From Lepidodermella squamata (Eukaryota; Animalia; Gastrotricha), in the NCBI GenBank assembly GCA_047495785.1, contig JBLDXI010000010.1, forward strand, positions 1,302,001-1,366,000: a stretch of DNA of 64,000 nucleotides. Direction: 5' to 3'. The position numbers and the translations under genes were made by a program. Within the stretch, counting starts at the first letter, position 1. Every line of letters starts with the position of its first letter. Shown here piece by piece: positions 27,557 to 64,000 of this stretch. The notes beneath the pieces were generated by a model. It was not told where the DNA came from. It saw nothing but the letters and a program-made list of their open reading frames with translations, and ran no database searches.

Positions 27557-27738
27557 TTAAGCCCAACAATAAGTTCATATCATCAAAATTAACTCCTTCA
27601 TGACCATTGCAGTATATAACCCAGTGATCACATATTCAAGTTGCTTCCGGTCATCTAACGTCAATAGCGAGTGCATTAATGAAACAAACATTGGAATTAG
27701 ACCGTGAATGAAAACTGGTTTATTGTAAATTGAAATGA

Positions 27739-29060: not shown

Positions 29061-29309
29061 CGTCGGTCTAAACTTGGTTTTTGAATAGAATTTATCAGTG
29101 CAGAGTAGTAGCATTGCTGAAACTCGCTGTTGTCATTTTGGTATGGGGGCGGCCTATAGATATATATATAATATTATATATTAGAATACTAATTGACGAT
29201 TCTGTCACGGCAACACGGTATCATGAATGAACGTTGAAACAAAGTAAGTACCGGATTTATTTCAGAATTATTCAAAATTATTGAAATATTTCCTATGTTT
29301 GTCCAATAA

Positions 29310-37234: not shown

Positions 37235-39139
37235 TGCCTGTTAACAAGAAAGTAAAAACTAGTTTTTTTAGGGTTTACTGGCAGTATTTAAACGCTGCAA
37301 TTCGCTGATAAGATAGCGACGTAAGTGATGCTGTAGTCGTGTTGTGAGCTGTGAATAACGACAGGCTATGATCCAAAGCGCAAATTCATACAACTTCATA
37401 TCAAATGAGACACCTCAAATGAAAAAAGGTCTTTATCGTCTGTGTTACGACGCACATAAGGGGTCACTCCTTACTAAAACGGCTGCGTGAATAATTGACT
37501 TTTTCAAAAAAATACCCAGCTTGGTAAAAGACATGTTTCATATACGCTAAGTATAAAATACACTATTAATAAAAGCAGGTCAAAATATGAACAGCCAATT
37601 TTCGGGGCTCCTCGAGATAAATCTTGATAGTCATGAGCCAATTCCGATACCAACACAAGCGCTAAGATATAAAACGAGTAATTGCGAGAGAAACTATGCT
37701 CGAAATTTGTTAATTTATGTTGCAGAGGTGTGTGATCCTACGTGCCGATATAATGTCTTGTCAATTTAAAAATGTTGAGCCCACGGACTTAAAGCAACTT
37801 AAATGTGTGCAAATTTTGTTCATTCTCGCGAAAAATAATAAGTTACAAGGAGAAATTACAATAGTGGACTCAGCGTGCTATTTATTCCAAGCAGAATATC
37901 TCTGTAACAGATATAGAACATTATCCCAAAGCTCTCTATTATTTTGGAGATGCAGTCGTACTAGAGAGTGTAGAAGATGCCTGGGTTGAAGCCAGGGATA
38001 GGCCCTGGGTAGGGTCGACCGCTACCCCTTGCTGGATAACCCAGGTTTGATTTGATTTTGATATCAGAAACTTCCAGCTGTTACGGTTAGAGATCTAGAG
38101 CACTCAAAGTTTAGGTTCAATTCAAGCTTGAAATTCGATCTCTTCGACAATTAAGCAATGGAGAATCTCCTCATTCGGCGACCAGCGCTGCTATTTTCTA
38201 GGAATTTTAGCAATCTGCCAATGTCTTTTTACATATCGATGCAACGCGGCTTGTCCACCAGGTGTCACAGTGTGCCGAATATCTGCACTGTGACGACGCG
38301 GCAGGGCTATTCAAAGCAAACCTATTCTCCAACCACACCGATACAATAGAGAAAAGAAAATTGTATGACCTGTATTTTGGTCCAAGACCTGCCAAAATAA
38401 TCAGAATCAGCTAATAGCTTCAGACATCAGGGCGAGCGGCCAACAGCCCTGAAATTCACGAAAAATGAAATAAGGCGTTCGCACCCGAGTCCGCTTTCAC
38501 CGTTTGATTACGCGATCATTTGTTGAGACAGGCATGAAGCTAAGAACTAAGGGAACCGGAATATAACTTTTTCCGTTGCTCCCTTGCGATGGCCGGATCA
38601 ATATTCGGATAGCCCATCGGCATTTTCCCGATTGGCAGCCTTCCTCTTGAAATAATTTCGCTAAAGCTAGTTTTAAATGCCTCAATGACCCAGAACGGCA
38701 CCATTCTCGATGAACAACGGGGTGAAATCTTGTATTTATCCTTGCTCATCAGCATTTGAGGTGAACAAGGGTGGACAAGGTTGCTAAAACTACTACTCCT
38801 ACAGCCTACACCACCTCACGACCGCACCATCGATGCGATAAATAACTTCGACCTTGTAAGCATCGTCTACAATAACAGAAAAAAGTAAGGTAAATTGTCG
38901 TTACCTAAAACTTGCTTCACCCGCGCTGGGTCAAATGCGACTGTCTTGAGCATTTTTCCTCAGTTTTGGCTAAGTAGGGAGGGCTGAAGGCTGAAATGCA
39001 TGTGAATTGAAGGTAGTCGAGCTATTGTAATACGAAGAGTAAAGAAAATAGTAATTTTTAGATTTCGGACATTTCTCTATTTTCAGGAACTACAGGACTA
39101 CAGGACGTTAACCTAGCCAGACAATTTTCATGTGTTACA

Positions 39140-44767: not shown

Positions 44768-47700
44768 TCATGCAAAGTTGTTGTCAAGTCTATTGTCTGG
44801 CGATGGGATTTCTTGCATGAACTCTTCCATTGTTAGACCAGCAGTGTCATCAAACATTGAACGATTGCGGTTTTTTCGGCGCTGCAATCTACCAAGAATT
44901 AAATAATAACAATTTGTAACACAAACGAAGAATAGTTAACTTACCCTAAATACACAATTACGGCAATTGCTATCAAAAGCAGCCCGCCGAGAACGCCAGC
45001 AATTATAATGTAAGTCATGTCTTGAGGATCCTCCTGCGTTATTTTTTCAGTCGACAGTACAGCAGTGGTTTTCTCAGTCACAGGGTCTATCGATGGTTGG
45101 GTCGACATTCCAGAGGTTGATTGAGGAGGCTCGGTCGCTATGGGCGTTGTGATTACCTCCTGTTCAGTTGTGGTCGTTGATGAAGCTGTTGTGGTAGTTA
45201 TCTCTTCGGTTGTAACGGACGCACTAGTTGTGGCAGTAGTCGTAGTAGTAGTAATGGGAGTTGTCGTAGGTTCAGTAGCCGTAGTGGTAATTTTTGTGGT
45301 GGTAGTTGGTTCTGTAGTAGGCTGTGTGCTAGCGGGTGTCGTAGTAGTAGTACTAGTAGTAGTAGGCGCCGAGAGGCCTATTTTGTACTTGTATAGTATC
45401 CCAGAGTCACTATCGACTAGGAATATCCACCCATCACCTACAATCATTTGGCTCCACATCGAGTCTTTCGGAATCACGTTATCAGCCACAATGACGCTAT
45501 GATCAGCCTTGTTTATAGCTACCATACCACCCGACACCAATCCTAGGATGTAGTCACGTGTGACTATCATGGTCTTACCCTCGCCGTACTCCTTCAATGA
45601 GACGCTGTAATTGCTCTTCAACCATCCCAAATCTCGACTGTAGACGTCGATTGATTTTTCCAACGGAACGTACACACCTTCTGGAGCCAAACAAGGCATA
45701 GTTACTTCTTGTGTAGAATCCCTCGGGATATTGTTCGTAAACCAAGTGAAATATTTGCCTTCCGAAAAGAACGAGTAAGTTTCAAAATTCACCTTTAGCA
45801 CAACTGACGCTTTCTTATCGGATACAGGCAACCATGTTGTTGATAAATAATCGCTTCCAGAGTATTTCTTCAGCAAGGCCAGAGTTTTTGGATCCAGAAC
45901 AAACAATCCATCCGGCGCCGAGACGTACAAGCCAACCCCTTCCACCAGTGATAGCCCCAAGATTTCGTCGTGAGGGGATTGAGGGAAATTGAGATCCTGG
46001 CTAACGGCAACTCGCTCACCCGTTTCAACCTTGTAGGCATAAACTTTTTGTACCGCTGTGAAGTAGACAAGTCCCAAATCATCGCTAACAACGCCTCCAT
46101 ATTTTCCGTAGAACACAGCTTTCGGGCCAACTCCAGCGTCAACACTCCAAGCTATCGACAAATCCTGAGTTCGAATCGCGTGGAACATTATCCCGCGATT
46201 AACTGTTGAGCTTCTCGTGAAAATTAATGAATATTCTTTAGATAAGAAGGGCTGTGAAAATTTTCGAAGAGTGTCATCAGAAAGTTGAACAGGTTCTGCG
46301 AAAGTATCCGTTACACTTGAATACCGCCAAATGTAAGAATTGTCTATATCCATTAGGTACAAGTAGTCGTCGAAGAACAGTGGATCATGAACTGCGAACC
46401 TATCCCATTTGGGAATTGGAGTTTTAGCGACCTGGATGAAAGCATTCGCAGCGCTGAATCCTATTCCATAGTTGACGTAACGGGAATGGCCATGATCTCC
46501 ACCGACATTGACCCAATTCAAGTCAGCTGCATGAGGCTCATAGTTATCGAGCTCAAGTTTCACGAGTTGTGCCTGCTCGCCATCGACTAGATACAGGCTT
46601 TCATCGTCAGCAAACAAGTAGTCATTATCCAGGGTGCTTGGCGTGAGATCGTCCACCACTAAAGCTTCGCCGTTATTAGTTTCGTCGTAAACAGCTAACA
46701 AGCCGCCGGAAATAAGTGAAAATACCATATTTTGCGTAGCGATAGGACCATTCTTAGGGTAATAGTCAATTACGGGGTTGTATTTCTGCGTAAAAAGCGT
46801 ATTCTTCAATCTGCCGTCTTCTCGGTTCAACACCTTGATGACACTCCCTTCACTGATGTAGATGCTATCAGGAGACATAGCGACAGCACTATCCCGATCA
46901 CGAAGCTGATGGTAATTGACCGTAGCCCAGTTGAACGGTAGTTTGCGATCGCAGTATTTGTATTCTACCTGATCCTTCTCATGCCAATTCATTGTCACAA
47001 AACTGGAGCCACGTGACACAGGTAGCCACTCATTCCCAAGGTATGAAACTGAATCGACGCTATCTTGTTTCTCCCCAGTTTTCGCATCGATCGTAAAAGT
47101 GTAGCCATTTGAAGCGGCTATGATAGTGTTAGCATTCAGTATAGCCAGACCTAACACATCCCTATATGATATTTCGATCAAAGAGTGGGTATTGAAAACG
47201 TAGGCTCCGGTTTGAATGGAGAGAGCGTGAACTGCTAGTCCAACTGGGAAGTAAACCATGTCGTTTACATCGCTAACAACTCCTGGCATCGACACGTAAA
47301 ACTTATAGTCCTGATCGCTCGTCTCAGCTTTGATTTCCCATAACTTGACCATCGACATTGAATCAAAGGCGTACAAGACAACTCCGTCTTCCTTGTCGTA
47401 ACTGCTTGTGAAGATCAAGCCGTGCTTCAGAGATGCGAATGGCTGGGCATAGACTCGATTTTGAAATTGGCTCGGCGTTAGCGTCGCTTCAGTGGACAGG
47501 GTTTTTTTGTCTAATCGCCAGATTGTGCCGTCAGTTTTCGACATGACGAATATTTTCTCTCCAATGATCAATGGCTCGTGGGCTTCGAAAGAACGGCCTT
47601 GATTAAACACATGCCGAGCTACTACTGTAAACGAATTCTTTCGATCTGATGTAGGGTTGTCGATGTCTACATATCTCGAATGGCCATGATCTCCTCCTGA

Positions 47701-50700
47701 ATTCACCCAAGAGTACCCAGTTACCGGTTGCGGAGTAGTTGGGGCCGTTGTTTCCAACACGGCGGGAGTTGTAGTCGAGCTGGATGCAACTACTTTATAT
47801 TTTCTGAAGGTCCCGCCAATATCAAAGGTGTAGATGAATTCACGGTTTAGAAGAATGTGTGAACTCATGACGTCGCTGTTGAAAATGCCAGGAATATCAA
47901 TAGTTTTCTTTGTTCGCTTGTGGATTACTCGAAAGCCCTCGTCGATTAGCGCGAAAACGCAGTCGTTTGTTATCAAAGGTCCACGCTTTGCAAGTGTCAC
48001 GTCGTAGAAATAATTATCTAATTGAGCAAGATTTTGTCTGTCTAGCCTCGATAAAGAACCTCGCTCTGATATGTAAACGCCGTCAGGAGCAAGCGCTGCA
48101 TCCAAGGCTTCTGGCTGCAGAAAAGAAGTTGAAACCAAACCTGAACGAGATTTATCGCCATTTTTGTCAACAGTAATCCACTGGGTAACGTCGGGGATCG
48201 GGTTGACTTGAAATACTATAGCAAGATCGTCTACAGCTACTTGAAACGCAGAACTAGCCACGGCGTCTTCCAAATCATTCGATTTGAATTCTCCACTGAT
48301 AGCGTCAATTGCGATATATCCTGTTGGAACTGCAGCCAAAATCGAGGACCCATCTGCTGAAAGGGTAATGCTGTACACGGGACCTGTCGTTACGATATCA
48401 TCCGTAGTGAACTTGACCTGACCACTTGGTATATGAACGCATCTCACTCTTCGCCCTATTCGAAAATACACCAAGCCCAGGACTTCATTCACAGCGCCGC
48501 CGAATCTATCGTTCATATCAGTTTCTTCGAAAGGTTCAATATCGTAAACGGGCAGTTGCCATAAAGGCTCAAGATGCAAGAGGTCGATGGCATGAAGGGT
48601 TGTTGTCTTTTCAACGGAATGATAACTCCTTGAAAACATAAGTCCATAGGCCACAGATATGAACGGCTGAGAGTAATAGTTCAATATGCTGCTCTGATCG
48701 ATTGAAAAATCATCTTCAACGAAGTCTTTCTCGGAAATCTTGTAAACGGTGAAGCCGCGTTTTGCCATGATGTAGAAAACACCATTTACGAGGAGGGGTT
48801 CCCACATCTCATTTCCGGACCAGGCAGGACCGGTATAGACAGACTCAAGTTCCACAGATTCCAAATCATCACCGTAATGTAGGTCTCTGAATCGAGTATG
48901 GCCATGATCACCTCCAGAATTAACCCAGGGCAAGTCATTAGGTTGAAGCACCGGCGTCGTCATAGGAGTAATTTGAGTGCTTGTTGAATCTTCTCGGAAC
49001 AAAGTGTATCTCATCATCCTACCTCGAACATCGAATGCGTAGATGTATTCGCGATTCAATAAAATATGGCAGCCAGAAATTGAGTTCAGGAAAGCGTCTA
49101 TTACTTCGAAAACTTTCTTTGTTTTCTTGTTGATACCAGTGAACCCATTAGGAGTAAGGAAGAAGATGTATTCATTTGTTACAATCAGTTCACCTTTCGG
49201 CTTGATATGCTCTAACCGATAGAAATTATCGTTCATCATCGTGTACCTGTCGTAAACATAAACCACCCCATCATCCGCTACGTAAACTCCATCCGGAGTA
49301 ACAGCTGGTTCATGCTGGAAGGATAATCCTACTTTAGCGAGATCAAAGCTATCGCCAACGATGTACTCATTGTCTTGCGTTAGCGAGGAATAGGCAATTT
49401 CTTCTGGAACAGGATAAATTGTTGCGATGATCGAATAGGAATCACCGGCGAGTTGATATTCATCAGGTGAATCGGCCCAACCTCGCATGTACGAGTTCCC
49501 AAGCCTGCCTGTCAGCGCATCGATTTTCACAAAGCCACCTGAAATCGCAGCGAATAAAGTTGACCCGTCATTCGAGAGAGTTATGCTGAAAAATTGCCCA
49601 TATCTGGCGACTTCTTCGGTTGTGAAATTGATACTACCGCTAGCAATATTCAAGCAGCGAACACGATTCCCGATTTTGAAGTAAACAAGATCGAGTTCTT
49701 CGTTTACAGCTCCCCCGAACCGGTCAGTCAAATCAAAGAACAGATTAGGAGACAAGTCGCTGGCAGGGATTTTCCACAAATGCTCGAGGTTTTCCAGATG
49801 AATAGCATGGAGATACATAGCTTGAGCTTCAACGTGAAAACTTTTTGCAAAGAGCAAATCATGCTTCATTGAAATGAATGGCTGCGAATAGCTGTCTCGC
49901 ATTTCTGATTCAACGATTTTCGCATCACGATACTGCAAATCGGTTTCGGAATATTTCCACAACGCGAACGATTTTTTCGCCATTATGTAGATATTGGAGT
50001 TGAAGATGAGAGGTTCCCATATCTCAATGTATTCCCAGATATTACCAACGTTAACAAAATCTGCGAGTTGGAAAGCGTTGAAATCCCGGCCATAGTTGAA
50101 GTTTCGGTACCGAGTATGACCGGAATCGCCACCATTTGTCGTCCAGGGTAGATTATTCGGTATATTTGCTGGGGTTGTTGTGGGTGAAGTATCTTCGACA
50201 AATTCATATTTCGAGACTGTACCACGTTCATCGACTGCAAATAGGTAATTCTGATTAACAACGATGTGGCACCCAGAAACATCTATCGGAAACATATATC
50301 GATCCCCGAACACCTCTTTTGTTTTCAAATTCTGACAAGCAAAACCGCTTTTGACAAGGAAGCAGATGTAATTGTTGGTAACTATCGGTCCACTTTGAGG
50401 TTCAGAGCCATTCAGTCCATAAATAGCTGATTCTTTCATGGTTTTTCTGTCGTAGACATAAATTCGACCGTCCCTCGTGACGTAAACCTCGTTTGGAGTC
50501 ACGGCTGGCTGATTTGTCCTGGATAAACCACGATCCTTATATTCATCTGCAATCAATGCGTCGGAGCCTGCGTAAGAAGCCCAGGAAATTTTGTTTGGCG
50601 ATGGCGCGAAAGCGAAGGTGGTCGAGTAATCGTCTTCAACTAGCTCGAAGTCTTGGCCAATATCTGCCCAGTCAATAGTGAATGAATAGTCAAAGTCACC

Positions 50701-52587
50701 AGTATCTGCTTCTATCTTCCCAAAACCATTTGTTATAGCTGCTAGAACATAAGATCCGGAATTAGACATAGTTACGCCATAGACGGACGAATCCAAGTCC
50801 GGGATTGAAGATGAAACAAACTTTAAATCTCCAGTCAAAACGTTCAGGCATCGAACGACATTTCCGACGGAAAAGTATACGTAGCCAAGTTCATCATTAA
50901 CAGCGTCGCCATATTGCTCATAGAACGGTTTATATTGCGGAAGAGAAGGCCCTTCAACAAGCCACACGATTTGTAATTTATTCGCATCGATAGCGTAGAA
51001 GTGATATTTGTCGGTTATTAGATCGTAGCTTTTCGTGAAAATCATTTTGTATTTCTCAGACAAAAATGGCTGAGCAAAAAATGTCTGGTATACCACTGAT
51101 CCAGGCATGATCAGCATCTGCTCCAGATTTTCCTCGTCAAGCGCCACCAGCTTCAAATCTTGCTTCGACATGACATATATTTTCCCGTCGAAGATCAGTG
51201 GCTCAAAGGCTCCGCCAAAGTCTTCAAAATTGAGATCTGTTGTCGCAACTAAGTTGACTGCATTGAATCTATCGCTAGGATGCGTTATGTTTCGAAACCT
51301 CGTATGTCCATGATTGCCACCAGAGTTCGTCCACGGGATGTTGTTGGATTTCGGACCTCTGGTGCCCAAACCGTACTTGGAAACCGTACCCCGAATACTG
51401 TCAACGAGAAGGACGTAATCTTGGTTTATTGCGAAGAATGATTCTGTAACGTTGTGATCCATCGCATCGTCTATGTAAAACACATGCTCAGAATTTCTAT
51501 TGAGCGCCGCCACTCCGCCTGGTATCAACACGAAAATGAAGTCCTGCGTCAGTATCGGAGCACTCTGAGTCTTAAGGTTGGGGAAGAAATGGAAATCCGG
51601 GCTGTCGTCTGGCTCTTCTTGATGAATTTTGAAGACAGAGTTTTCGCCTGAGAGGGCGTAAATTCCATTTGGAGTCACCGATGGTGCTAATGAGTGAACC
51701 GGCCTGTATTCAGCATTGAAGCTGACGATTTGCGACATCCAGTCTTCATCTAGCCCAGTTCCAGCGTAAAACACACTATTTTCACCAGCCCATAGAGTGA
51801 CAGTCACTTCCAAGCTATCAATTGCAGGGGCCCAGTCCTCTCCTTGAACCGCGAAGGCATTGTGAAGTTTAGTTCCATTATCAACCACTTCTCCAGTCAT
51901 TGCGTTCAGTTCGAAACAACCTCTTGGAATCGCAGCAACAAGAATCCCCTGCCTTAAAGCCAGACCCATGATTGGCGAGTTGAGAAACGGCTCCACGGCT
52001 AAATCCCCCGTAGTGAATTTAGTCTCTCCAGTATTAGCGACCAGAGCTCTGATTTTTGTGCCGACTTGGAAGTAAACCAGACTGAAGACGTCGCTCTCTG
52101 CCCCACTGAATCTGCCCTTGAATTCACCAGATAGATCATCAGCTATTACGGTCCAGGAAAACCCATCAGGTCCAAGAGCTAAAGCGTGGAACTCTATTCC
52201 AGTTGTTGGGTGATAGCTTTTCGTGAAAATGGTGTTCATACGAGCGGAAATGAAGGCCTGGCCGCACTGTCGACCGGTTTCAGCTGTGAAAGTTAACCTT
52301 TCGTCGAAGGATAGATCTTGCTCGTTTAACACCCAAACATATCCGGATTCCTTTGCTGTGATATAAATTTTGCCGTTGTATATCAAAGGCTCCCATAACT
52401 GCTCACTGTTCCAGTGGTCGAGTTGTATTTTTTCTTTGAGAATGAAAGAGTCGATGGTGCCATCGAATGAGTAGTCGCGATAGCGGGAATGGCTTGAATC
52501 TCCGCCTGTGTTCAACCAAGGCTCATCCCATGCCCTTGAAAATTGAGCAATCGAAGCAATAACAGCTAGTAAGATAGCAATCCTCAT
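44768..52587 (-). CDS. Beta-propeller-repeat type I membrane protein, family member 2 (6 repeats)
   Basis: Paralogue of member 1. Likely start MRIAILLAVIAS at 52587 (an upstream in-frame ATG exists at 52647). Intron 44889-44944; last exon GLQRRKNRNRSMFDDTAGLTMEEFMQE...FA*. Confidence 0.85.
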
Positions 52588-52981
52588 AGCACTTAGCAAA
52601 AAAATAAGTGAAAATAGTCCAGTTAACCTACATTTGCCTGCAACCATTCTCTGATAAGATAACGAATCCTCACGATGGCTATGAATAGCAGAAAATATTA
52701 TTCAAAGCGCAAATAAATGGCGCTTCGTATCAAAATGAACCAAGCTTTGAATGTCGGCCAAAATGTAAACGACCGTTTCGAGGATACGCCCTAAAGTTTG
52801 TTTTCTCGGTTGTCGTGTGTGTCGCGAGTGTCTCATCGCGGGCGACAAACGTTGCTAAGCCCCTCAAGGATAAAATATTTCGCAAATAATCTTGTTTCAC
52901 CATAGAACCAACAAATCAAAGTCTACATTGTGATTTATTTCATATTAAAAGTTCCAATAAATCAATTAGGAGCTTTTGGCA

Positions 52982-55803
52982 TTAGGCTGTGGGATCTCGT
53001 CCCATTTCTTCCATTATTAGGCCATTATTATCGTTAGAACTTGAAAGTTTGCACCAACCCCTTGGTTTAGCGAATCTGGGAAACATAAAAAAAATCATGT
53101 ATGTCAAGCCATATAGTTTTAGAATTCAAGACTTACCCGAGATAAACATTCGCAGCCAAAGATAATAAGAGAAAAACGCCAAGAATACTCCCAGTTATAA
53201 CAAGAGCTGTTTCAAGGTCGTCTTTGTTAGTTTCCTGCGTCGTAAGCCCTTCACTCAGAGTTGTAGTTCGTTCTGACGAAACTTCATCCTGCGCTGTTGT
53301 TGATAGTAATAAATCAGTTGTTGATCCATCAGTAGTCGAAGTGGGCGAATCGGTGGAGACAGCGGGTGTTGATGTTGTTTCATTCGACCTCAAATAGTAC
53401 TTGAGCAATGTTCCAGATTTGCTGTCAACCAAGTAAAACGCATGCCCATAACTAGGATCATCGACCAAAATCAAGTGGCTGTGGGTCAAATCCTGGGATA
53501 TAGCGGTGTTAAGATATATCATGTCTGAGCCCAACTTGCTGATGGCCAAAATACCGCCCGGAATCATACTTACAAGGTAATCTTTGGTTACAATCAATAT
53601 ATTAGAAATTTTATCATTATCCAGATTCACACTGGCTTTAGTGATACGTCTACCCCAATCACGGCCAAAAGCGCTAATCGATGTCTTAGTCGGGATGTAA
53701 ACAGCATCAGGAGCTATGCAAGGCAGGATCAAGTCTTGCTCTTGATCTTTGACTTGACTAGTACTCCACGAGTAATACGGCCCCAACGAATGAAATTGAG
53801 CATATCCGTTGTAAATCGATATCCATATCGCCGACTTCTGATCAGCGACCGGCGCCCAGTTGAATAACTGATCACCTGTTTGCTTGGCAGAGTCCAAAAT
53901 CGATAAGGTTCTAAGATCCAACATGAAAATTCCTGTGGGTACAGAAACGTATAGCCCAACATTTTCAACCAAGGACAAGCCGAGAATGGAGTCGGTTGGT
54001 GAGTTTAGGGTGTACAATGCCTCACTCTCAGCTACAAACTTTCCAGAGTCGATTTTGTAAGCTTGAACTGTTTGTTTTGTTTGAAAATAGACTAGACCTA
54101 GGTTGTCGCTCACTACACCACCGAAGTTAACGTAGAAAACACTGACTGTTGCATTTTCAGCCGGAACTCGCCAACTATCAGACAGATCGGCTGCTTTCAC
54201 TACATGGTACATGAGCCCAGTAGAGGCGTGGTAGCTTCTTGTGAACAACAGGCCACTTTTGGCAGAAACAAATGGCTGAGAATAAAGGCGATTCTTCTCA
54301 ACGAAGATTTGTTTCCGCTGAACTAGGTCCAGTGTCTCCGCAGAGTACTGCCAAATGTAGCCATCCGTGTAATGCATGAGATAAATGAACCCATTCCAAA
54401 CTATTGGCTCAAATAGGTAGATTTTGTCGAAGAATTCAATATTCGCGCCAGCAATTTGTATGAATTCGTTTTTATTACTTCCTAACGCTACGTCTCGATA
54501 GCAGGAGTGACCATGATCCCCTCCGAAATTCAACCACTCGGATGTTCCAGAGTTCGGCTCATATGAACCCAACTTCAGTTGGATCAACTGGGCCTCATTG
54601 CTGTCAACAACATACAAATGATTGTCATCCATGATCAAATAGGCATCAGTGACGTTCTCTGCCATCAAATTTTCACTTAGCAGATAGCTTGCGCCTGCTT
54701 CTTGGTAAAACCCGGCAACCCCACCTGGTACCAATGAAAAAATACTGTTCTTTGTCGAAATGGGCCCATTTTTCGGGGTAATTGGATGCGAGTCATAGAC
54801 GACTTTCACAGCTCCATCACTTCTGCCTAAACCATAGATTGATTTCCCCCAATTGGTGTAAAGTAAATCTTGAGATAGGGATGGAGTCACATCTCGAAGG
54901 TCTTGCGTTGGATATTCTTGTGATAACCAGCTGGGACCATTTAATTCGATATAATTGTATCTCAACTGGTTGAATCGTGTCCAGTAGGAGGAAACGTGAG
55001 CCTTACTATCAGAAACCGGTTGCCACTCAAGGCCAGGTAGGAACTCATTGTTGAAAGTGCAATCTTGAACAAAAACACCCGTTCTAGCATCTATCAGACA
55101 AAAGCCTTGTTTTATCGAGACAACTAGCTGAGTTTCTCCCATCAAAGCGATTCCTAAGGCTTGGCTACCAAAATCTCTTGTTGTGAATACGTAATTTCCA
55201 GTAGTCGAGTTCAAAGCATGGATCTGAGCCCCTGCTGGAAAGTAAACCAAGCCATTTGCATCACTTACAACGCCTGGAAGTCGCTCGTAAAATATTCCCA
55301 TCGATTCCGTCAGTTTCGCTTTAGTTAACCAGGCATAGTGAAGACTTTCAGTATCTATCGCATAGAAAATCAGGCCATCTTTCTCGTTGTAACTTCTTGT
55401 GAATATCAAGCCGTTAGCTTCGGACGCAAATGGTTGAGCGTAGAGATAATTACTTGCTGGGTTAGGAATTGAAACGTCGAGTAAGCTAAGACCTTCTTTA
55501 CGTTTAGCACGCCACATTTCAGACGTTTCTCTGGCGAAAATGAAAATGTGCCCGTTTAAAATCAACGGCTCGTGGAGAAGAATTGGCTTGCCAGCACTGA
55601 ACTCTTCTCGGGCAGTCATAATGAATGTGTTCTTCTCCAAAGGCATAGACAAGTCGAGGTATCTTGTATGCCCGTGGTTTCCGCCAGAATTCAGCCAATT
55701 GAACGCTTTGGGATCTTTATTGGCAAGCTTATATTGCAGGATTCTTCCTCGGCTGTCGAAAGCTAAGATGTTGTCACGGTTTAGCAAAATGTAGCACCCG
55801 GAC
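52982..55803 (-). pseudogene. Family member 3, 3' fragment (piece 3 of 3): two repeats, stalk, TM, last exon
   Basis: Open frame from the footprint edge (SGCYILLNRD...). Intron 53076-53136; last exon ends DPTA* at 52982. It begins with TSD A (acccggac, 55796-55803). Confidence 0.85.
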
Positions 55804-55834
55804 CATAGACAATGATGTACCATCATTGTCTATG
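55804..55834. mobile_element. P-element-type excision footprint J1 (31 bp)
   Basis: catagacaatgatgtaccatcattgtctatg = 16 nt of the element's right TIR plus 17 nt of its left TIR, overlapping by 'ta'. Confidence 0.9.
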
Positions 55835-57412
55835 GTTGACGCTTTCTACATCGAACGAATATCATACAGATGATAGTCGCGTCTACGCTCAACCTGTCAT
55901 TTCAAGCCGATATGGAATTATTTTCACGAGAAGCTTCCACACTAATGGTGAAGATATAATCATCCACGCTCTTAGTACTGTTGACTTACAGCTGATATGG
56001 AATGTTTCGGAACCAGTCAGTATGAATTCGGCCTTCAATAGCGATATCGGTGGGGTGGTTTGCGATGCTTGTGGGTTGGTTTACTTTCAGTCGACCACTT
56101 TTATCAAAGCCTATAAAATTTTAACGGGAGAGCTGTACTTGAATGTTAGCTACTTCCATGAACCTATAGTTGGGCTCTCCCTAGTTGACGATAGTAAACT
56201 TCACGTCTCCACACTCAAAATGTACCAAGTATTAGACGCTACGACCTTAGAGCTCCTCGATTACTCGACGTTCAACGATAATGATTTCGAGAACTGGGTG
56301 CCGATAGCTGACCAAAAATCAGTGATAAGGACTCGAGTGAAATCGCAGTCTCTAACTTTCACATCCAAGGGGAAGTATCTTGATTGGACAACGGCTGAGA
56401 TAGACGCATTCAGCGTACCTTATGTCCCACCTTCTTTGGCCCCAGATGGAGTATACATCGCAAAAAGATCATCAATTGATGTGTACAGTCGTGATTTTGG
56501 GAAAGTCAAAAACATACCACTTGATGGGCTGGCACTCCAACACAGTGTTATAGTGACAAGGAACTATGTCCTTAGTATGATAGGCGGGGGCATGGTTGCT
56601 GTGAATAGGGCGGATTCAACTCGGATTGAAATAGTGACCAACAGTAGGCCGCAAGGTAATGAAGACAGTCATATGGTGTTAGTTCGGGACGTAACTTACG
56701 GGCATGCCATATACTATGTCGACAGGGAATCCGGGAAACTAAGCAAGTATTACCTGGGCGTCAAAACCCCCGATGAAACAACAACTCAAGAAGTAACGAC
56801 TCCTCAGGTTATTGAAACCACAACTACTGTCGAAACAACAACAATGGAGTTGACTACTTCAAAGCCTGTAACAACTCCAAAGCAAGGGGAAACTACGACG
56901 ACAACTCCAGCATACGTGTCAACAGCCGAACCTACTACTACAACCTCGACAGCGCCTGTTACGACCCCAGAAGCCGAAGTAACTACCACTTCAACCGGTG
57001 CTGAAACTACAACAACTTCAAAATATGAACCAACAACCGAACCTTCCACTCCTGCTGGGATCGAGACGACAACAGAGGAGAAGACTACCAGTGCTCCTAC
57101 CACAGAAGGTCCAACTGAGAAGCCAACAACTGAGAGGAATGACTCAGAAGAGCCAGACATCACTCTAGCGGCTATTGCTGGAGTTCTTGGGGGTGTTTTG
57201 CTGTTCTCAGTGCTTGGAAACGTGTTAATGGGGTAAGATCAAATTGAATTTCAGCAAATACATCCTCTGTAACACATCTTTTTGCCAGGCTAAAACTGTA
57301 CCGCAAACCTCGAGAACGCTCAATGTTCGATGACAATGTCGGTCTAACAATGGAAGACTTCTTACAAGAAACGGGGCCGCCTGTTACTGGTAACATTGAT
57401 GATACACCTTGA
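55835..57412 (+). pseudogene. Family member 4, inverted 3' fragment (rest of last repeat, stalk, TM, last exon)
   Basis: Open frame LTLSTSNEYHTDD...TM. Intron 57233-57288; last exon GLKLYRKPRERSMFDDNVGLTMEDFLQE...TP*. It begins with TSD C (gttgacgc, 55835-55842). Confidence 0.85.
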
Positions 57413-57571
57413 AACTAAATTCCGTTGAGATCCAAATAAAACAAGTTGAATATCATTTTTGTATCTTATATCTTTTATTGAGATTCTAACAGCAGAAAGA
57501 GAATCCATAAGCAACAAGGATTAAAGTAAAAATATTTCGCATCGAGAGCCGGAAAACGCCGGAAATGTCTA

Positions 57572-58256
57572 TCATCCTCCTTTGAGTGAAGCTCGCTTCT
57601 CGTCACTAACAGCCGGCGTCCCATCAACGGACTGCATGTTATTCACGATAAGAATCTCCTTCTCGCCAACAATTTGCACGAAGAACGTGCCCTGGTGCCG
57701 TTGCTTCATCTCACGCCTTACATCAAGCGCAATTTTCATCGCCACCCCGATGGTTAATAGACTGACAAAAATTTCGAGCGAGCAGTCGCCGAGTGCTATC
57801 AGTACAAACGTATCTTTCTTCTGAAAATAGTTTGATCGTTACAAAAATTTGGGAAAAATGCGACGAAAAATGACCTCTTTTGCGTAGAAATGACCATCTA
57901 TCGTTTGATTAACTAACCCGAGTCGTAAAAGCTGAATGCTGATTGTACTAACGATTATTCCTGTGATGCTGAGAGATAGCAAAACCAATATGAGGTAGAG
58001 AGTTCGCCTCCTTATTGCGTAAAATCCGGTTAATGCTGTGAAAATTGACTGACAAAACAAGAAAACCTTTAGAGGTTTTGTCTTGACAATTATTAAATCT
58101 TACCATCGCCCCAGTTAAAATGGGCCCAAGACTGTAGGCCATCCATACTTCAGCTCTGATAGCTGATATGATGCCTGTCCCTATGGCTACGACGCCAATT
58201 ACAAGCTGAAGTATCGAAAGAATTATCACAAAAATATTAGAAGCCGAATGAGACAT
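57572..58256 (-). CDS. Four-TM protein, TMEM196-like (MS4A/CD20-like), 3 exons
   Basis: Exons 58256-58104, ~58048-57875 and 57820-57572 splice into one frame: ILQLVIGVVAIGTG...AEVWMAYSLGPILTG...SIQLLRLGLVNQTIDGHFYAKEKKDTFVLIAL. Confidence 0.7.
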
Positions 58257-59393
58257 TTTTTCCCTATGAATAACGGTTATTTGTCGTTTTTAGGCCGTTT
58301 TCAAAATGATGGTATGCTTTAGTGCACAATGATTTTCGTTGGCATGCGGCCATGCGCCTTTGTTATTCGATCGACTAAATATTCTTATGAGAACGATGGC
58401 CAGCGTTTTCATATTGAATTAAATACCCACGGGAGATCAAATTACGAAAAAGACATCTTAGTACAAGAAAAAACATTGCCACGATGCGCAAACAATTTAC
58501 TTATGCGCTATGTTTCTCGTACAGCGAGTCGATATAAGAGAATATAAGAGAATTCTGTATCGATTTCACGAGTGGCTGCTTGTCAATTTAGTCACCCATT
58601 CACGCTGGCGATATGCAAGCATTTTAGCAGCGCAAATATATCCCCATATTCCCGTATTATAATGGTGTCAAAACGCCATCGGCATTCAGTGAATGAACAA
58701 TAGTGGGAATCAATAATCACGAGAAATATCTAGAAAAAGCTTAACTCTACAATTATGGGAGGGCTGTCGAAAAACACATAATGGAAACATTTTTATGGCT
58801 TCGCAGAAAGATTTCGTCCTTGTTGTTCAAGATCTGAGACAACAATTTCTTCTATTTTTCTATTACAGTAAAATGCAGGAAAGTTGCTTTTTAATTGTTC
58901 TCTCCTGTTATTGTCCCAGTTTTCTCCGCTATATTTGTGCGATTGTTGTTACGCACTGCACACAAAATCGCTCAAGTAAGATTATTCCGGCTACCACAAG
59001 TCTGTGGCTAATTATTAGATTCGACTGTTGCCTGAGGGCGCCATGCTTGGTATCAGACAACAAGTCTGAATGCCGGGAACATTGTGCGCTCATCCATCAA
59101 TCCAGATGAAAAAGAAGGAAAACCAGATGTAGCCTCGTGTTAAAACTCCTCGAATTGATGAAATGGCAGGTGAAAAACTTTAACCTAAATTTCTTGGACA
59201 CTGTATAAGCAAATATTGCGACATGACCTGATAAAAATGGCAAAGCCGCTTCAGTATCGTGTATAATGCGATTCTAGTAGAAAGTAAGGGTTTTTATCTT
59301 ATCTATTAATTGATAACTTGACCGAATTACGGTTCCCAAATTGGATCAAGCCATTCCTATGGTTTCCGGATCGGAGTAGACTATTTTTGAGAT

Positions 59394-59648
59394 ATGAATT
59401 CCAGTCTAACCATCTTCATCGGATTATTGTTTCTGCAGCTACCTGGTGGATATTTGTACGAAGGCAGTGCATCAGTCTATAATATTGCTTGGTCGAATAA
59501 TGGAGGAGATTCTGGCCACTCTCGTTTCAGGAATTTCACATACGGGGCAAATTTCGATGCATTTTCCCTACTACGAGAAAGCAATGGTGAACAACCATGG
59601 CAAAGCAACTTCATATGGGAGCCTCTGATTTTCGAAAATGCTATCTAC
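59394..59648 (+). pseudogene. Family member 3, inverted 5' fragment (piece 1 of 3): signal peptide and start of repeat 1
   Basis: MNSSLTIFIGLLFLQLPGG...WSNNGGDSGHSRFR...WEPLIFENAIY, then runs into a TGA in footprint J2. It ends with TSD B (ctatctac, 59641-59648). Confidence 0.85.
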
Positions 59649-59680
59649 CATAGACAATGATGTAACCATCATTGTCTATG
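59649..59680. mobile_element. P-element-type excision footprint J2 (32 bp)
   Basis: catagacaatgatgtaaccatcattgtctatg = 17 nt of the right TIR plus 16 nt of the left TIR, overlapping by 'a'. Confidence 0.9.
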
Positions 59681-60601
59681 ACCCGGACGTATCGTTCAAA
59701 AAAGCGTCGGTGACCTGGAAAGTAAGTCTCGACTGCTTGCCTAGTCCAGTAAATCCTCCAGATGAGAGGAAGAAGATGTAGTCGTTAGCCACGATTGGTC
59801 CACTCTGTGGAAGTATCTCTCCAGAGGCGTAGACGTCAATAATTCTCATAGAGTTTCTGTCATACACAACAATTGATCCGTTTGATGCCACATACAGGCT
59901 GTCATTAGACAAAGCAGGCTCTATTGCGCTGATCGTTATGTTTTGATCAAAATTAATCGATTCGCCGATTTTCTTATCGAAACCTCGCGGATTGAAAGAA
60001 TAGAAGGATAGATGTGCAGAACTAGGCCAAGTTGTGCCGATACTTGAAATCTCATCCAAGGCTATTTGATAAGGCAAACCTCCATCGGCAGTTCCTTGCA
60101 TATAAGTACTTCTTATATCCCCAGTCTTAGCATCAATCTCGACATGACCCCGTGGTATTGCTGCTAATAAAGTGGATTGATCGCTGGAGATCGTTAAGCT
60201 GAAAGCTGATGGGTCTTTCATTTCACGCGTTGTGAAATTCAGTTTTCCAGTCTCAACATCTATAGCTAGAACTCTTGAGCTGTCGAGGAAATAGACTAGG
60301 CCAAGTTCATCGCTAACTGCAGCGCCAAATCGTCGAGTAACATCGAAGTTATCGTCTCGAAAGGAGTTATCTGTTTCAAACTTCCAAGTTTCAGCCAAGC
60401 CAAAAGAATCGACCGCATGAAGAACTGACGTGCCATCTTTCAATTGATAGTTTTCGAAGAAAATCACGCCGAATCTGAGTGACAAAAACGGCTGGGAGCA
60501 ATATGAGTATATTGTGCTAAACGATTTTGTGAGCTGTAAATTCAATGTTTCTTCATCATACTTCCACAGCGTACAGCCTTGTTTTGCCATAATGTAGATA
60601 G
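59681..60601 (-). pseudogene. Family member 3, middle fragment (piece 2 of 3)
   Basis: Open frame IYIMAKQG...DAFLNDTSG, bounded by TSD B' (gtagatag, 60594-60601) and TSD A (acccggac, 59681-59688). Confidence 0.85.
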
Positions 60602-62382
60602 CATAGACAATGATGGTACAGATCGGACACTCACGCACTTCGCATTGAAACACTAATTATGCGTGGATCGGCCATTATAAATCCGGCCGAAAAGTCGTTG
60701 TTCTCCTAAATTCTTGAAAAAAATATCGAAAAATCGGGCATTTTTTTACGGTAATAATGATCCAAGTCCCGTAGTGCGGTTCGATTTCGTTGCCGAGAAA
60801 ATCAATATCGAAAAATCGATTACTCACACTCTGTATTGTTGTGTTGCGTCATCGCGTGCCATGCTCACTCGATAAAAATAAGCATTCGAAAAATGTAAAG
60901 TTGTTGTGTGCATGTGTCATTAAAGTCAGCACTTCAGAGGAAATTTTTAAGGAGGATTTCTTGAAATCTATTTCCTACCCATTTTTATTGAGTTTCATTT
61001 GTATAATGGCGACGATAGCAGCCAAAAGGTGAGTGATGATCCTCCTTAAATTGTGCTCATTTTTATTTTTTTTTTCCAAAATTTTGAAACCGATAAAAAT
61101 ATTTAGTATAGGCTGCAAAATTGTGAAAGAAATTTGAAGTAGGTTTTATTATAAATCTATGAAACAAAATCTCATTTATTGGAAAATAATTCGAAAATTG
61201 ATTTAATTCAATTTTAAATTTAAAAATTGATTTTTCCATAATTTTTTTGAATTTTTCGATATTTTTTATTCAGACCAAGGTTGATTTTGCCTCGATAATT
61301 GAGACTTTATTTTCTTCTAGGTTGCTGAGCTTCATGATTTAACTGAATGGGACGAACTTGAAGCTGAAGACGAGTTACTGCAAAGAGGAATGGAGTACGA
61401 AGCAACGCTCCCCCTAATTGGGGAAGAAATTATTGCCAACATTGGTGGATTTTGCGTCAAAAAACTTCTAACTGACAAGCTGAAATGCCCCGGCTGCATC
61501 GATTCCCTGACACGCGATTTCCTTCTGACTCCATGCCGTGTGATAAAGGGCTTCAGTTTCCGAAAACAAGACGGGAAATTATGGTAATAAACATTTTGCT
61601 TGGAATTCGCTATCTAAAAGTACGATTTCAGTCTCACTCGCCAGTCGTTGACGGTATATCGAATCGTGAAATCCGTCCGGTCGATCATACGTGAAAATCT
61701 GGACAATTACATAAGAACTTCACTACCCATCGTTGCCGTGCAAAGAACGCTTTTTTACGCGGCTTGTGCCAGGCCGGTGCTTCTTGACGGCCTTTGCCAA
61801 GAATTCGACGCCGGTGCTGCGCCACACTCTCATCAACTCTTCAAATCGATTGTCGCTGTTGCGGCTGGAACTTTCCTTCGCCATGAGCTCAAAATGCGGC
61901 AGGTGGCTATGAAGCAACCGACGAAAAGCCGTAAAGCGGCTCAAAACGAAAACATGTGAATGAAAAATGAAAAACGCTTCAATTTCTTTCTATTTTGATA
62001 TCTATCTACAATTTTTCGATCAACTTAAATTAAAGCTGAAAAATAGCAATAAAAATAGAGTATGCCACAGATGTTCGTTTTTCGTAACAATCAAATTTTG
62101 AGTGGCGCTAAAAAAAACTTGAAAATAGACTTAACAACTGACAAAAATCGCTACAATCTTTTTTCCTAATTTAAAAATCATAGGGAAGGAACCGCACCTC
62201 GAAGTTTGCATCACTAGCATCCTTGAAAGATGAGGAATTTTTAGGTCCAAGTTTCAAAAAATTCCGAGGCCTACGACTATTTTCACCTTTTAAATCAATG
62301 CATTTAAATTAGTGTGCAAATTTATGGTTTAGCGTAAACAGGCAAGTGCGTGAGTGTCCGATCTGTTACATCATTGTCTATG
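60602..62382 (+). mobile_element. Non-autonomous P-superfamily DNA transposon (1781 bp, 39-bp TIRs)
   Basis: TIRs 60602-60640 and 62344-62382: catagacaatgatg(gt/ta)acagatcggacactcacgcactt, 37/39 identical, with CA...TG termini. Its 8-bp TSD partners are found at displaced positions, and the internal exons resemble a P/THAP9 transposase C-terminus. Confidence 0.85.
61321..61959 (+). pseudogene. Spliced remnant resembling the C-terminal domain of a P-element/THAP9 transposase
   Basis: Exons ~61321-61583 and 61632-61959 (48-bp GT-AG intron) join in frame: IANIGGFCVKKLLTDKLKCPGCIDSL...GKLCLTRQSLTVYRIVK...HSHQLFKSIV...FLRHELK, compared with the recalled family pattern YIAGFVVRKL..KC..C...L...GGL..PS...H...L+K.I. 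No THAP or catalytic domain is visible. Confidence 0.55.
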
Positions 62383-64000
62383 GCGTCAACAAATCTGTAG
62401 CGTACTTCCATGCGTACCCTTTCGATCTCTCCATCAGATAAATTTGACCGTTGTAGACCAGCGGTTCGAAAAAGCCTGACCCTGGCGTTGCATTAATGAT
62501 ATCAGTCGAATAAGCCAGAATGAATGCATTTGCTACATTTTGAAGGGTGAGGTCACGATATCTCGAATGACCAGGATCACCTCCCCAAGCTGCCCATTCT
62601 TCGGTTTTCGAGTATGGTGTAAAATTGTCCAGAACAACTCGAGTTATATCGCCCTTCTGACTATCGACCGTGTACAGGCTTTCATCGTCCATTACCAAGT
62701 AAGAATCAGTGACGTCCTCAGAAATAGCATCAGTGATCGCAAAAGGCCTGAAGCGATCGCTGCCTGCGTCGTTGTAAATCCCCACGATGCCACCCGAAAT
62801 TATCGAGAAAATACTGTTCCGGTTAACAATTGGCCCGTTATTCGGATGATACTGACGCAAGCCCATATAGCTCTTGATAGATCCTTCGAATCTGTCCAAA
62901 GTAACAAAGGAATCATCTTGGGCTATGACTACTCCATCAGGAGACAATGCCGCTGTTGCAGCTCGATAATCAGAGCCAATATTGACACTTTGCGATCGCC
63001 ATTTGGGACCATTAACTTCGTTGTAGTTGAACGCTACCTCGTCATCTGATGGCCATAATACGAAAACAAAAGCTGCATCGTCGCTAACTGGCTGCCATTC
63101 GTAGCCGTTATACAGTCTATCACCGATAACGCAGTGTTCGTCCATATTACCATTGGTCGCGTTAAGCGTACAGTATCCCTTATTCACTGATATTATCAGG
63201 GTATCGTCATTCATCAAAGCCAAGCCCATAACATTGATGTCAGAGGTAGATGAAACCAATTCTTGGCTTTTGAAGACATACGCGCCATCTGTAATTTTGA
63301 GAGCATGGACTCGCCGATGAGCCAAGAAGTAAACCAATCCATTGCTGTCACTTACAACACCAGGCAATCTTTCAAAATTTTGATCTTCAGTCTCCGGTAG
63401 GTCGATTTGAGTATCCCACTCCGCTACGAGGCCGTTAGCCCTTATGGCATGGAAAATCACACCTGTTTCCAGGTGGTAGCTTTTTGTGAATATGTAGTTG
63501 TAGGCCTTTGAAGCAAAAGGCTGCGAGAAAAGACAGCCTTCAAATGGGCAGTTAAATTGCCATTCCAATTGCTTGTGAAGATATTTCTTTTCGAAAATCC
63601 AGATTGTAGCGTCAACTCGGGACATTACAAAAATTTGATCGCCTAAAATCAGCGGCTCGTGGAGTAGGATAGAAGTGCCGTTTGTCAACTTGTGCTTCGC
63701 TACTCCGGTGAATGAATTCATCCCAGCTGGGCTCGAAAAATTCAAGTATCTTGTATGACCGTTATTACCTCCAGAGTTCAGCCAGTCAAAATTTGTCTGG
63801 AAAGGTCGGGGCGTGGTCGATGTGGATTTTGTTGGAATTATCGGGTCGTATTCCAATGTGTATTTAGACATCTCGCCCCCGCCATCGATTACGTAGATGT
63901 AATCGTGGCTTAGCACCAGGTGAGTTCTCGTAGGATCAGTTGTAAAGCTGCTTTGAAATACCTCCTTGGTATTTCGGTTTACTCCAGCGAAACCATTTTT
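62383..64000 (-). pseudogene. Family member 4, 5' portion (start beyond the window), interrupted at the transposon
   Basis: The frame is open from the window edge to ...GYAWKYATDLLT and stops in the TIR. It ends with TSD C' (gcgtcaac, 62383-62390). Confidence 0.85.

Follow-up and report, generated by a model that had tools for sequence, protein, structure and literature searches.

Two tandem beta-propeller genes in the window (the whole 64-kb stretch of DNA analysed here) were most probably broken by a recent germline rearrangement driven by a P-type transposon, which is polymorphic with an intact, expressed allele; we put the probability of this reading at about 0.85. The change would have converted the order S0-S2-rc(S1)-S3 into S0-S1-S2-S3 over a 7-kb stretch by two nested inversions, with breakpoints at three 8-bp target sites (A, B, and C). 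Of the three element copies at these sites, two would later have been lost by transposase excision, leaving scars of 31 and 32 bp, and the third, a non-autonomous copy of 1.8 kb with B and C as its flanks, would have stayed in place. A recent transposon-driven event that knocked out two genes had been proposed in the first-pass annotation, and this proposal is upheld by the 8-bp pairs, by colinearity with paralogues, and by ancestral joints A and B in read contigs. Exchanged duplications at inversion breakpoints are an accepted sign of transposon-made inversions, as in the case of Galileo of the P superfamily (PMC2775673).

Organization and reconstruction of the locus

The present order in the assembled window is S0-F1-S1-F2-S2-E3-S3, in which four segments are separated by two palindromic scars (31 and 32 bp) and one 1,781-bp element with 39-bp inverted ends. 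Member 3 of the gene family now exists as three pieces and member 4 as two. Coordinates recomputed from the sequence agree exactly with those of the first-pass annotation throughout, and the features are as follows:

52982..53075, minus strand: last exon of member 3 (30-codon cytoplasmic tail and stop), as read from the sequence
53076..53136, minus strand: member 3 intron, 61 nt, GT-AG, separating the transmembrane helix from the tail exon
53137..55803, minus strand: S0, 3' two thirds of member 3 exon 1 (two propellers, stalk, and transmembrane helix), bounded by 8-mer A (55796-55803)
55804..55834, minus strand: F1, 31-bp excision scar
55835..57236, plus strand: first part of S1, C-terminal 467 codons of member 4 (last propeller, stalk, and transmembrane helix), now inverted; starts with 8-mer C' (55835-55842)
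57528..58306, minus strand: small multi-pass membrane-protein gene inside S1, inverted along with S1
59394..59648, plus strand: last part of S1, member 3 start codon and first 85 codons (signal-peptide-like), split off from the remainder of the gene; ends with 8-mer B' (59641-59648)
59649..59680, minus strand: F2, 32-bp excision scar
59681..60601, minus strand: S2, central 0.9 kb of member 3, containing most of propeller 1, limited by 8-mers A (59681-59688) and B (60594-60601)
60602..62382, plus strand: E3, 1,781-bp internally deleted element
62383..64000, minus strand: S3, upstream portion of member 4, open over 540 codons and continuing past the window edge; starts with 8-mer C (62383-62390)

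The six 8-bp flanks form three exact pairs, none of which sits around the same insert, just as had been noticed earlier. Pair A is direct (acccggac at 55796 and 59681), pair B consists of ctatctac at 59641 and gtagatag at 60594, and pair C of gttgacgc at 55835 and gcgtcaac at 62383. Identity ends at 8 nt in pairs A and C and extends to 11 nt in pair B, because the 'cat' of the element end matches there by coincidence. Among six random 8-mers of the window, any direct match occurred in 5.7e-4 of trials, and arithmetic from the measured single-pair rate gives an estimate of about 1e-11 for three disjoint 8-mer pairs arising by chance with either strand allowed.

These three pairs dictate the reconstruction S0-S2-rc(S1)-S3. 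Joining the segments through single copies of A, B, and C restores both reading frames, and the three peptide joints quoted in the first-pass annotation were reproduced. Restored member 3 has an uninterrupted minus-strand frame of 1,276 codons, with its ATG at window position 59394 (on the + strand of S1), followed by the 61-nt intron (53136-53076) and the 30-codon tail ending at 52982, which yields the complete coding sequence of 1,306 aa (3,921 nt) that had been claimed. Restored member 4 has an open frame of 1,003 codons, representing the 3' part of the gene, and leaves the window. At all three joints the peptides align to conserved paralogue motifs with no gap, and the reconstructed genes match paralogues M1 and M2 in single, gap-free HSPs spanning all three joints; as judged by sequence comparison, this colinearity confirms the reconstruction. 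The gene fragments contain no stops and no frameshifts, which indicates that the rearrangement is recent. Both member 3 and member 4 are predicted to be null on the scrambled haplotype.

Read evidence for an intact allele

Read evidence consists of contigs assembled from run X1 (DNA) and run X2 (a cDNA library in which the SMART oligo is visible), covering one DNA sample, ancestral joint A in X2, and ancestral joint B in both runs. In X2, a 3,732-nt contig with about 91% identity to the window links 55797 to 59683, and 60593 to 59648 on opposite strands, corresponding to S0-A-S2-B-rc(S1). The restored joins, for which a search of RNA data had been suggested, are thus spanned by a cDNA contig at A and B, and the order found in cDNA is the unscrambled one. 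In X1, a 496-nt contig at depth 85, with nine SNPs relative to the window, joins 60604 to 59637 on opposite strands, which is joint B without an insert. The unrearranged form carries a single, insert-free target copy at joints A (X2) and B (X1 and X2), and the contigs bearing these ancestral joints directly confirm the reconstruction.

Both alleles were identified in X1 at site 59604, 44 nt from joint B, with G at depth 85.1 and A (the window type) at about 64. The G is linked to the intact joint B and is common to X1 and X2, as are eight SNP sites in 60378-60569 in the intact-joint contigs of the two runs. Because the SNPs differ, including that at 59604 beside joint B, the intact molecules represent another allele and are not unscrambled products. 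That the same DNA sample also contains an unrearranged allele, free of inserts and distinguished by SNPs, indicates that the rearrangement is germline and allelic. That it is an allele rather than a paralogous locus rests on depth arithmetic (about 65 plus 85, compared with about 110-150), and the one DNA sample appears to be polymorphic for the rearrangement.

The full scrambled order is read from the assembly, and its contig support is the part from F2 to S2, where a window-identical X1 contig (depth 66) runs from 59651, including 30 nt of F2, into S2. Contigs bridging F1 or either E3 junction were found in neither X1 nor X2, and over 60173-60604 X1 yielded no window-type contig, the alternative type only. 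X2 also has numerous low-depth (3-7) 'opposite strand' joints, spaced by about 100 nt; they lie all along S1 and S2, fit neither order, and were set aside as fold-back artefacts of the library or assembly.

Element ends and the path of rearrangement

The 14-nt end core catagacaatgatg is present in the window at 55804, 59649, and 60602 only, and its reverse complement at 55821, 59667, and 62369 only; no further end-motif copies or other such loci were found within the 64 kb. The 39-bp inverted ends of E3 start with cataga and are 37/39 identical, with mismatches at positions 15-16, and the element is flanked by B on the left and C on the right. Read on the minus strand, F1 comprises 17 nt of the left end and 14-16 nt of the right end with a 2-nt 'ta' overlap, and F2 comprises 15-16 nt of the left end and 17 nt of the right end with a 1-nt overlap, so neither scar retains more than 17 nt of any element end. 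Each scar is polarised because the element ends differ at positions 15-16, and the polarity from left to right is F1 (-), F2 (-), and E3 (+). True target-site duplications must pair one left-end with one right-end flank, and the observed polarity is one of the two combinations out of eight that give every 8-bp pair one left-end and one right-end partner. The orientations of the scars and the element are as expected if each 8-bp pair formerly flanked one element. We rejected miniature elements or chance palindromes as the origin of the scars, the halves of which match the two different ends of E3 with consistent polarity.

The element is a putative P-type transposon, an assignment made on mechanism scars only (8-bp duplications, 39-bp inverted ends, and no more than 17 nt of either end left in the scars). 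Traits of the P superfamily that are present include the 8-bp target-site duplication (three pairs, with a single copy at empty sites A and B in contigs), inverted repeats beginning CAT, and, in F1 and F2, excision remnants no longer than 17 nt per end. Similarly, P and Pdre elements generate 8-bp duplications, and P transposase performs a 17-nt staggered cleavage (PMC10983969). Autonomous copies in this superfamily code for a GTP-dependent, RNase-H-like transposase with a THAP domain. E3 encodes a short first exon and two 3' exons of a putative ORF. No transposase homology was found for its ORFs in Pfam, PDB sequences, 1.84 billion representatives, or the Atlas, and such homology could not be shown because E3 is an internally deleted copy. 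The two 3' exons had nothing relevant in Pfam, the first of these two had no match in the Atlas, the second gave two spurious membrane-protein matches among the 1.84 billion representatives, and comparison of the exons with PDB sequences returned chance matches only. The ORF layout may resemble the C-terminus of P/THAP9 transposases. A hAT element was rejected despite the common 8-bp duplication: excision left 14-17 nt of each end here, which hAT excision is not known to do. A full-text literature search for the 14-nt end motif found no paper. Element depth in reads is 1,200-3,800 compared with about 120, corresponding to tens of copies, and a copy 100% identical to E3 was identified at another locus in run X2; the multi-copy state and the identical copy elsewhere suggest that the family has recently been active.

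Anatomy, reconstruction, ancestral joints A and B, and orientation logic are direct observations; the path to this state is one that we infer, and hybrid-end transposition, ectopic recombination, and multi-break rejoining yield the same end product. Our preferred path would comprise one insertion, two hybrid-end transpositions into nearby targets, and two excisions, five events in all. In hybrid element insertion in D. melanogaster (Gray, Tanaka and Sved, 1996; Svoboda et al., 1995; both as cited in PMC2775673), the ends of different or sister P copies likewise cooperate and insert nearby, and inversions form between opposed copies, each of which has an old 8-bp flank on one side and a new one on the other. 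Elements may be kept or lost at the breakpoints of P-induced rearrangements. Those cases are reported to come from dysgenic laboratory crosses and mostly from genetic mapping, whereas the present one is a spontaneous allele read at base resolution. Alternative transposition of maize Ac/Ds and in rice transgenes, involving reversed ends or sister chromatids (PMC1592236, PMC3744419, PMC3470690), is also similar in that non-standard end pairs shuffle gene fragments and 8-bp duplications record the history; however, Ac/Ds is a hAT system with hairpin chemistry and tiny scars, in contrast to the 14-17 nt of each end found here.

Ectopic (homologous) recombination is a possible but less favoured path. 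Local insertions A (minus), B (plus), and C (plus) would have been followed by two successive inversions, each arising between oppositely oriented copies, and by two excisions. P elements are known for local hopping, and the orientations needed (one copy opposed to two) are those deduced from the scars. The mechanism has been demonstrated for Galileo inversions with exchanged duplications (PMC2775673). This path nevertheless takes seven events compared with five for hybrid-end transposition, and recombination would have to act between 1.8-kb repeats merely 0.9-4.7 kb apart. In Galileo, chimeric copies are diagnostic of recombination and identical copies of hybrid insertion (PMC2775673), but this diagnostic is blocked here, where two copies are reduced to scars.

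The Galileo inversions of Drosophila buzzatii (Delprat et al., 2009; PMC2775673) share with the present locus opposed copies at the breakpoints, duplications exchanged between breakpoints, a single target copy in the non-rearranged chromosome, and natural polymorphism, and copies in opposite orientation are indeed found at the breakpoints of each inversion here. They differ in spanning megabases and having 7-bp duplications, compared with 0.9-4.7 kb, two nested events, three breakpoints, and 8-bp duplications in our case. Unlike Galileo, two of the three copies have been excised to scars, two coding sequences are cut, and the host is not a fly.

Another route to the same structure, which we regard as unlikely, is one multi-break event in a single germ cell that already carried three elements (P1, P2, and P3). 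P1 would have been excised whole, and cuts at the right end of P2 and the left end of P3 would have freed the 3.8-kb S1, which was then end-joined inverted into the P1 gap, forming both scars at once, while the broken direct repeats P2 and P3 collapsed to E3 by single-strand annealing. Such an event explains F1 as a right-end stub by A joined to a left-end stub by C, F2 as a right-end stub by B joined to a left-end stub by A, and E3 as having its left flank from P2 and its right flank from P3. Multi-break rearrangements at P sites in dysgenic Drosophila, with elements lost or kept at the joints, were reportedly described by Engels and Preston in 1984. The event requires three prior insertions and four simultaneous cuts, however, and two-element scars cannot be told from one-element scars by sequence.

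It is highly improbable that the element family acts recurrently on the propeller-receptor cluster through scrambling, segment exchange, and occasional restoration, in the extreme version in a regulated or tissue-specific manner; if true, such action would provide a fast-evolving surface family with a constant supply of presence/absence and domain-shuffling variation. An assembly artefact, in which haplotypes or repeats were mis-joined at element copies, is very remote as an explanation. Although the F1 and E3 junctions are unbridged in contigs and X1 departs from the window at some sites, mis-joins arise in long repeats and would not make polarised 31/32-bp scars and three exact 8-bp pairs, and X1 contains both the window-identical contig across F2 and S2 and 80% of the sampled 31-mers of the stretch.

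Programmed or recurrent somatic scrambling of a variable receptor family, with the 8-bp repeats serving as pointers as in ciliates, had been raised in the first-pass annotation as an ongoing scrambling-unscrambling system; it is not supported, and we give it almost no weight. Both orders do occur in one DNA sample with the unscrambled one expressed, the restored joints keep one copy of each 8-mer, and the family is variable, but the SNPs at 59604 and at the eight sites indicate that neither form derives from the other, the 'spacers' consist of a multi-copy transposon and of canonical scars of transposase excision, the depths (near 65 and 85) are in line with two alleles, and no other such locus exists in the window. 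In the scrambled genes of spirotrich ciliates (Oxytricha and Stylonychia), segments are similarly permuted or inverted and short end repeats specify the joins, but the process is programmed, genome-wide, and RNA-guided, and somatic copies have the same sequence as the germline segments; the intact form here is a different allele, whose joint contigs carry their own SNPs, and the spacers are transposon scars.

The germline rearrangement is a known kind of mutation, comparable to P-element and Galileo rearrangements, and represents no new category of mechanism. The locus is an unusually legible natural record, at base resolution, of a P-type transposon restructuring genes, in which target duplications, end polarity, 17-nt-limited scars, a hybrid-flanked copy, and a segregating intact allele are readable together. 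These features suggest that aberrant end pairing and the cleavage chemistry of P-type elements are at work beyond Drosophila, in an invertebrate whose element family was active recently.

The beta-propeller gene family

Two genes of an undescribed multi-propeller membrane-protein family are disrupted together on the scrambled haplotype, a natural double knockout allele. Two ORFs (29480-37240 and 44944-52701) and the restored members 3 and 4 lie on the minus strand; the earlier description of four tandem members on this strand is correct as to strand, but other genes intervene between the first two. The family is predicted to comprise type I membrane proteins with three or six BamB/PQQ-like beta-propellers, laid out as a signal-peptide-like start, tandem beta-propellers, a Ser/Thr-rich stalk, one transmembrane helix, and a short conserved tail (with the motif GLIMEEM in member 3 and GLTMEEF in paralogue M2). 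M2 also has the same intron and tail-exon arrangement as member 3. This predicted layout makes the earlier label of surface receptor plausible for the family.

The predicted model of one propeller unit (pLDDT 83.7, pTM 0.85) matched tetrathionate hydrolase and BamB in Foldseek searches (E down to 7e-13, TM 0.6-0.74) and PQQ-like propellers in AFDB (E down to 2e-16), in agreement with a BamB/PQQ-like eight-bladed propeller fold of about 350-400 residues. Of five ORFs scanned against Pfam, the S0 fragment matched PQQ_2 below the curated cutoff and the other four had no match, and a word-index search returned no relatives with either the 2,568-aa paralogue or the 898-aa S0 piece as query. Variability within the family is evident from alleles 2-14% apart in S2 and from a shifted repeat register between paralogues.

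The small gene carried by S1 (57528..58306) contains introns of 54 and 55 nt (57821-57874 and 58049-58103). It has no Pfam match and is transcribed in cDNA run X2, where its joints have CT..AC ends. Elsewhere in the window, a class C GPCR is encoded at 42130-43941 (+) between the first two family members, and neighbouring genes, including Sushi, two-pore K channel, and class C GPCR genes, are consistent with an animal.

Inserts, flanking pairs and element ends

A scripted motif scan located the 14-nt core catagacaatgatg in the window only at 55804, 59649 and 60602, and its complement only at 55821, 59667 and 62369. Three inserts, which separate segments S0 (up to 55803), S1 (55835–59648), S2 (59681–60601) and S3 (from 62383), and three pairs of flanking 8-mers were recognized:

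F1, 55804–55834: 31-bp short palindromic insert
F2, 59649–59680: 32-bp short palindromic insert
E3, 60602–62382: 1,781-bp element
8-mer pair A, 55796 and 59681: direct
8-mer pair B, 59641 and 60594: inverted
8-mer pair C, 55835 and 62383: inverted

None of these pairs flanks one and the same insert, and the core positions and pairs match exactly the layout described in the first-pass annotation. When six 8-mers were drawn at random from the window, any direct match between them arose in 5.7e-4 of trials, from which we calculate a chance of the order of 1e-11 for three disjoint pairs on either strand.

P-family elements generate 8-bp target duplications, and P transposase cuts one strand 17 nt inside the element end (PMC10983969). 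The 39-bp inverted ends of E3 are identical at 37 positions and mismatched at positions 15–16 (left ...gatgGTa, right ...gatgTAa), so that the polarity of the scars can be read. On the minus strand, F1 consists of the first 17 nt of the left end followed by the last 14 nt of the right end (16 with a 2-nt overlap), and F2 of 15–16 nt of the left end followed by the last 17 nt of the right end; all halves are ≤17 nt. Judged by their sequence, F1 and F2 would be the expected product of end-joining two P-type donor stubs. F1 and F2 are minus-oriented and E3 is plus-oriented, and this combination is one of only two among the eight enumerated in which one member of every 8-bp pair adjoins a left end and the other a right end. 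These orientations imply that the copy originally enclosed by A lay in minus orientation and those enclosed by B and by C in plus orientation, with a site order of S0-A-S2-B-rc(S1)-C-S3.

Reconstructed genes and the propeller family

Segments S0, S2, the reverse complement of S1, and S3 were joined so that each of A, B and C is present once, at its joint. Of the two broken genes, member 3 is then open over 1,276 codons from its ATG at 59394, and a 61-nt intron and a 30-codon tail exon (ending at 52982) complete a 3,921-nt CDS (1,306 aa), which reproduces the length claimed earlier. Member 4 reaches 1,003 codons and extends beyond the window. The two genes were compared with two intact paralogues:

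M1, 29480–37240, minus: intact single-exon ORF, about 2,586 codons
M2, 44944–52701, minus: intact single-exon ORF, about 2,586 codons

Member 3 aligns with M1 in one HSP (aa 34–1192 against 1257–2432) spanning joints B and A, and member 4 with M2 in one HSP spanning joint C. Every joint is crossed without a gap, and conserved motifs continue across it, as in WEPLIFENAIY|IMAKQG versus WEPLILDGAIYVMARRG.

The S0–S3 fragments share 25–39% identity with M1 and M2, with a periodicity of ~400 residues. The AlphaFold model of one propeller unit (alignment of 15 units) is confident (pLDDT 83.7, pTM 0.85), and the modelled unit matches eight-bladed BamB/PQQ-type beta-propellers. The sole Pfam match in the family ORFs scanned was a sub-threshold PQQ_2 on the S0 fragment, and word-index sequence searches with a paralogue and the S0 piece as queries found no relatives. 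From the N- to the C-terminus, the proteins contain a hydrophobic signal-like start, three or six propellers, a Ser/Thr/Pro-rich stalk, one transmembrane helix, and a short tail, which is encoded by a separate exon after a ~60-nt intron and carries a common GLxMEE motif. Because of this layout, the proposed label of putative cell-surface receptor is reasonable.

M1 and M2, both with six propellers, are out of register relative to each other. M2 47741–51345 (units 2–4) shares 80% DNA identity with M1 33495–37105 (units 1–3), one whole unit (M2 48937–50154, M1 34691–35908) shares 90%, and the 3′ 3 kb align in register at 83%. The register shift implies that each gene gained or lost a different unit, and points to unit-level unequal exchange within the family.

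Two probable alleles in the sequencing contigs

Logan contigs of a DNA sample (X1) and a second run (X2) were inspected over a 6-kb stretch without joint C. X2 was taken as a cDNA library because the SMART oligo is present as a loose end. Its 3,732-nt contig covers S0, skips from 55797 to 59683, continues through S2, and then passes from 60593 to 59648 on the opposite strand; this is the ancestral order with joints A and B insert-free, at about 91% identity to the window. X2 also contains an element copy that is identical over 792 nt and differs in its flank. Another X2 contig (depth 59) joins 60640 to 61583, inside E3, on opposite strands and probably represents a further copy from this element family that has been rearranged internally.

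X1 contains 80% of the words sampled from the stretch and has window-identical contigs, one of which runs from inside F2 into S2 (59651–60080, depth 66). A 496-nt X1 contig (depth 85) passes from 60604 to 59637 with a change of strand, representing an insert-free joint B, and eight of its nine SNPs against the window are common to X2. Position 59604 lies 44 nt from joint B and is mixed in X1: G (85.1) is the letter of the intact-joint contig and of X2, and A (about 64) is that of the window. Read most simply, the sample carries two alleles, one scrambled and one ancestral and expressed; allelism versus a second locus was judged by depth (about 65 + 85 versus 107–149 where both coincide). No X1 or X2 contig bridges F1 or either E3 junction, and X1 has no window-type contig in 60173–60604.

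The two alleles diverge very unevenly. Over S2 as a whole, the non-window allele differs by about 9% (cDNA contig), and in the first half of S2 (59683–60170) by an estimated ~14%, because only about 8 of 78 differences fall in 60173–60593, whereas the two alleles are nearly identical in S1 (0–0.4% different; 55836–57557). This unevenness suggests that, in the first propeller of member 3, the alleles are old or have undergone conversion.

Origin of the present order and neighbouring genes

The flanks, scars, colinear paralogues and ancestral-joint contigs support the original interpretation of a recent transposon-driven rearrangement breaking two genes, and the locus is a very clean new example of an already known kind of event. 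As a net change, S1 crossed S2 and became inverted, equivalent to two nested inversions with breakpoints A, B and C. We prefer, on parsimony, a five-event route of one insertion, two hybrid-end insertions that use sister copies and hit targets close by, and two excisions. In this route, each hybrid-end insertion would produce an inversion between opposed copies, each copy having one 8-bp flank that is old and one that is new. A second route needs seven events, namely three local insertions (−,+,+), two ectopic recombinations between opposed copies, as shown for Galileo (PMC2775673), and two excisions. In a third, three insertions are followed by one multi-break event, with the freed S1 ligated inverted into the gap of the copy at A and two direct copies collapsing to E3. 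P-type or other cut-and-paste elements are known to behave in each of these ways. The three routes yield an identical product, and the sequence gives no choice between them because the Galileo chimerism test needs copies that are now scars.

The first-pass suggestion of programmed or ongoing scrambling and unscrambling of a receptor family is not supported: unscrambled molecules differ in sequence from scrambled ones, the spacers consist of transposase scars together with a transposon present in many copies (E3 depth 1,200–3,800 versus about 120), and an end-motif scan found no other instance within the 64-kb window. The evidence fits an active element family rather than a dedicated system. 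An assembly artefact is argued against because an assembler cannot create scars of 31 and 32 bp that have a polarity and come with three complementary 8-bp pairs, and the F2–S2 side is reproduced exactly in X1.

S1 also carries a small multi-pass membrane-protein gene (57528–58306, minus) that was moved and inverted along with it. This gene has no match in Pfam, seems intact, and is transcribed, both of its introns (54 and 55 nt) being visible in the X2 cDNA. Other genes in the window include:

18687–25009, plus: multi-exon gene with repeated Laminin_G_3 domains and a Sushi domain
26331–29132, minus: two-pore-domain K channel gene
42130–43941, plus: class C (7tm_3) GPCR gene without a recognisable ligand-binding domain

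At 3–10151 (plus), a frame of 3,383 codons stays open throughout and extends past the window start. It contains RHS/YD repeats (E 1e-9), matches DUF6443 weakly, and is predicted to be a giant intronless teneurin/Rhs-like gene with no relation to the propeller family.
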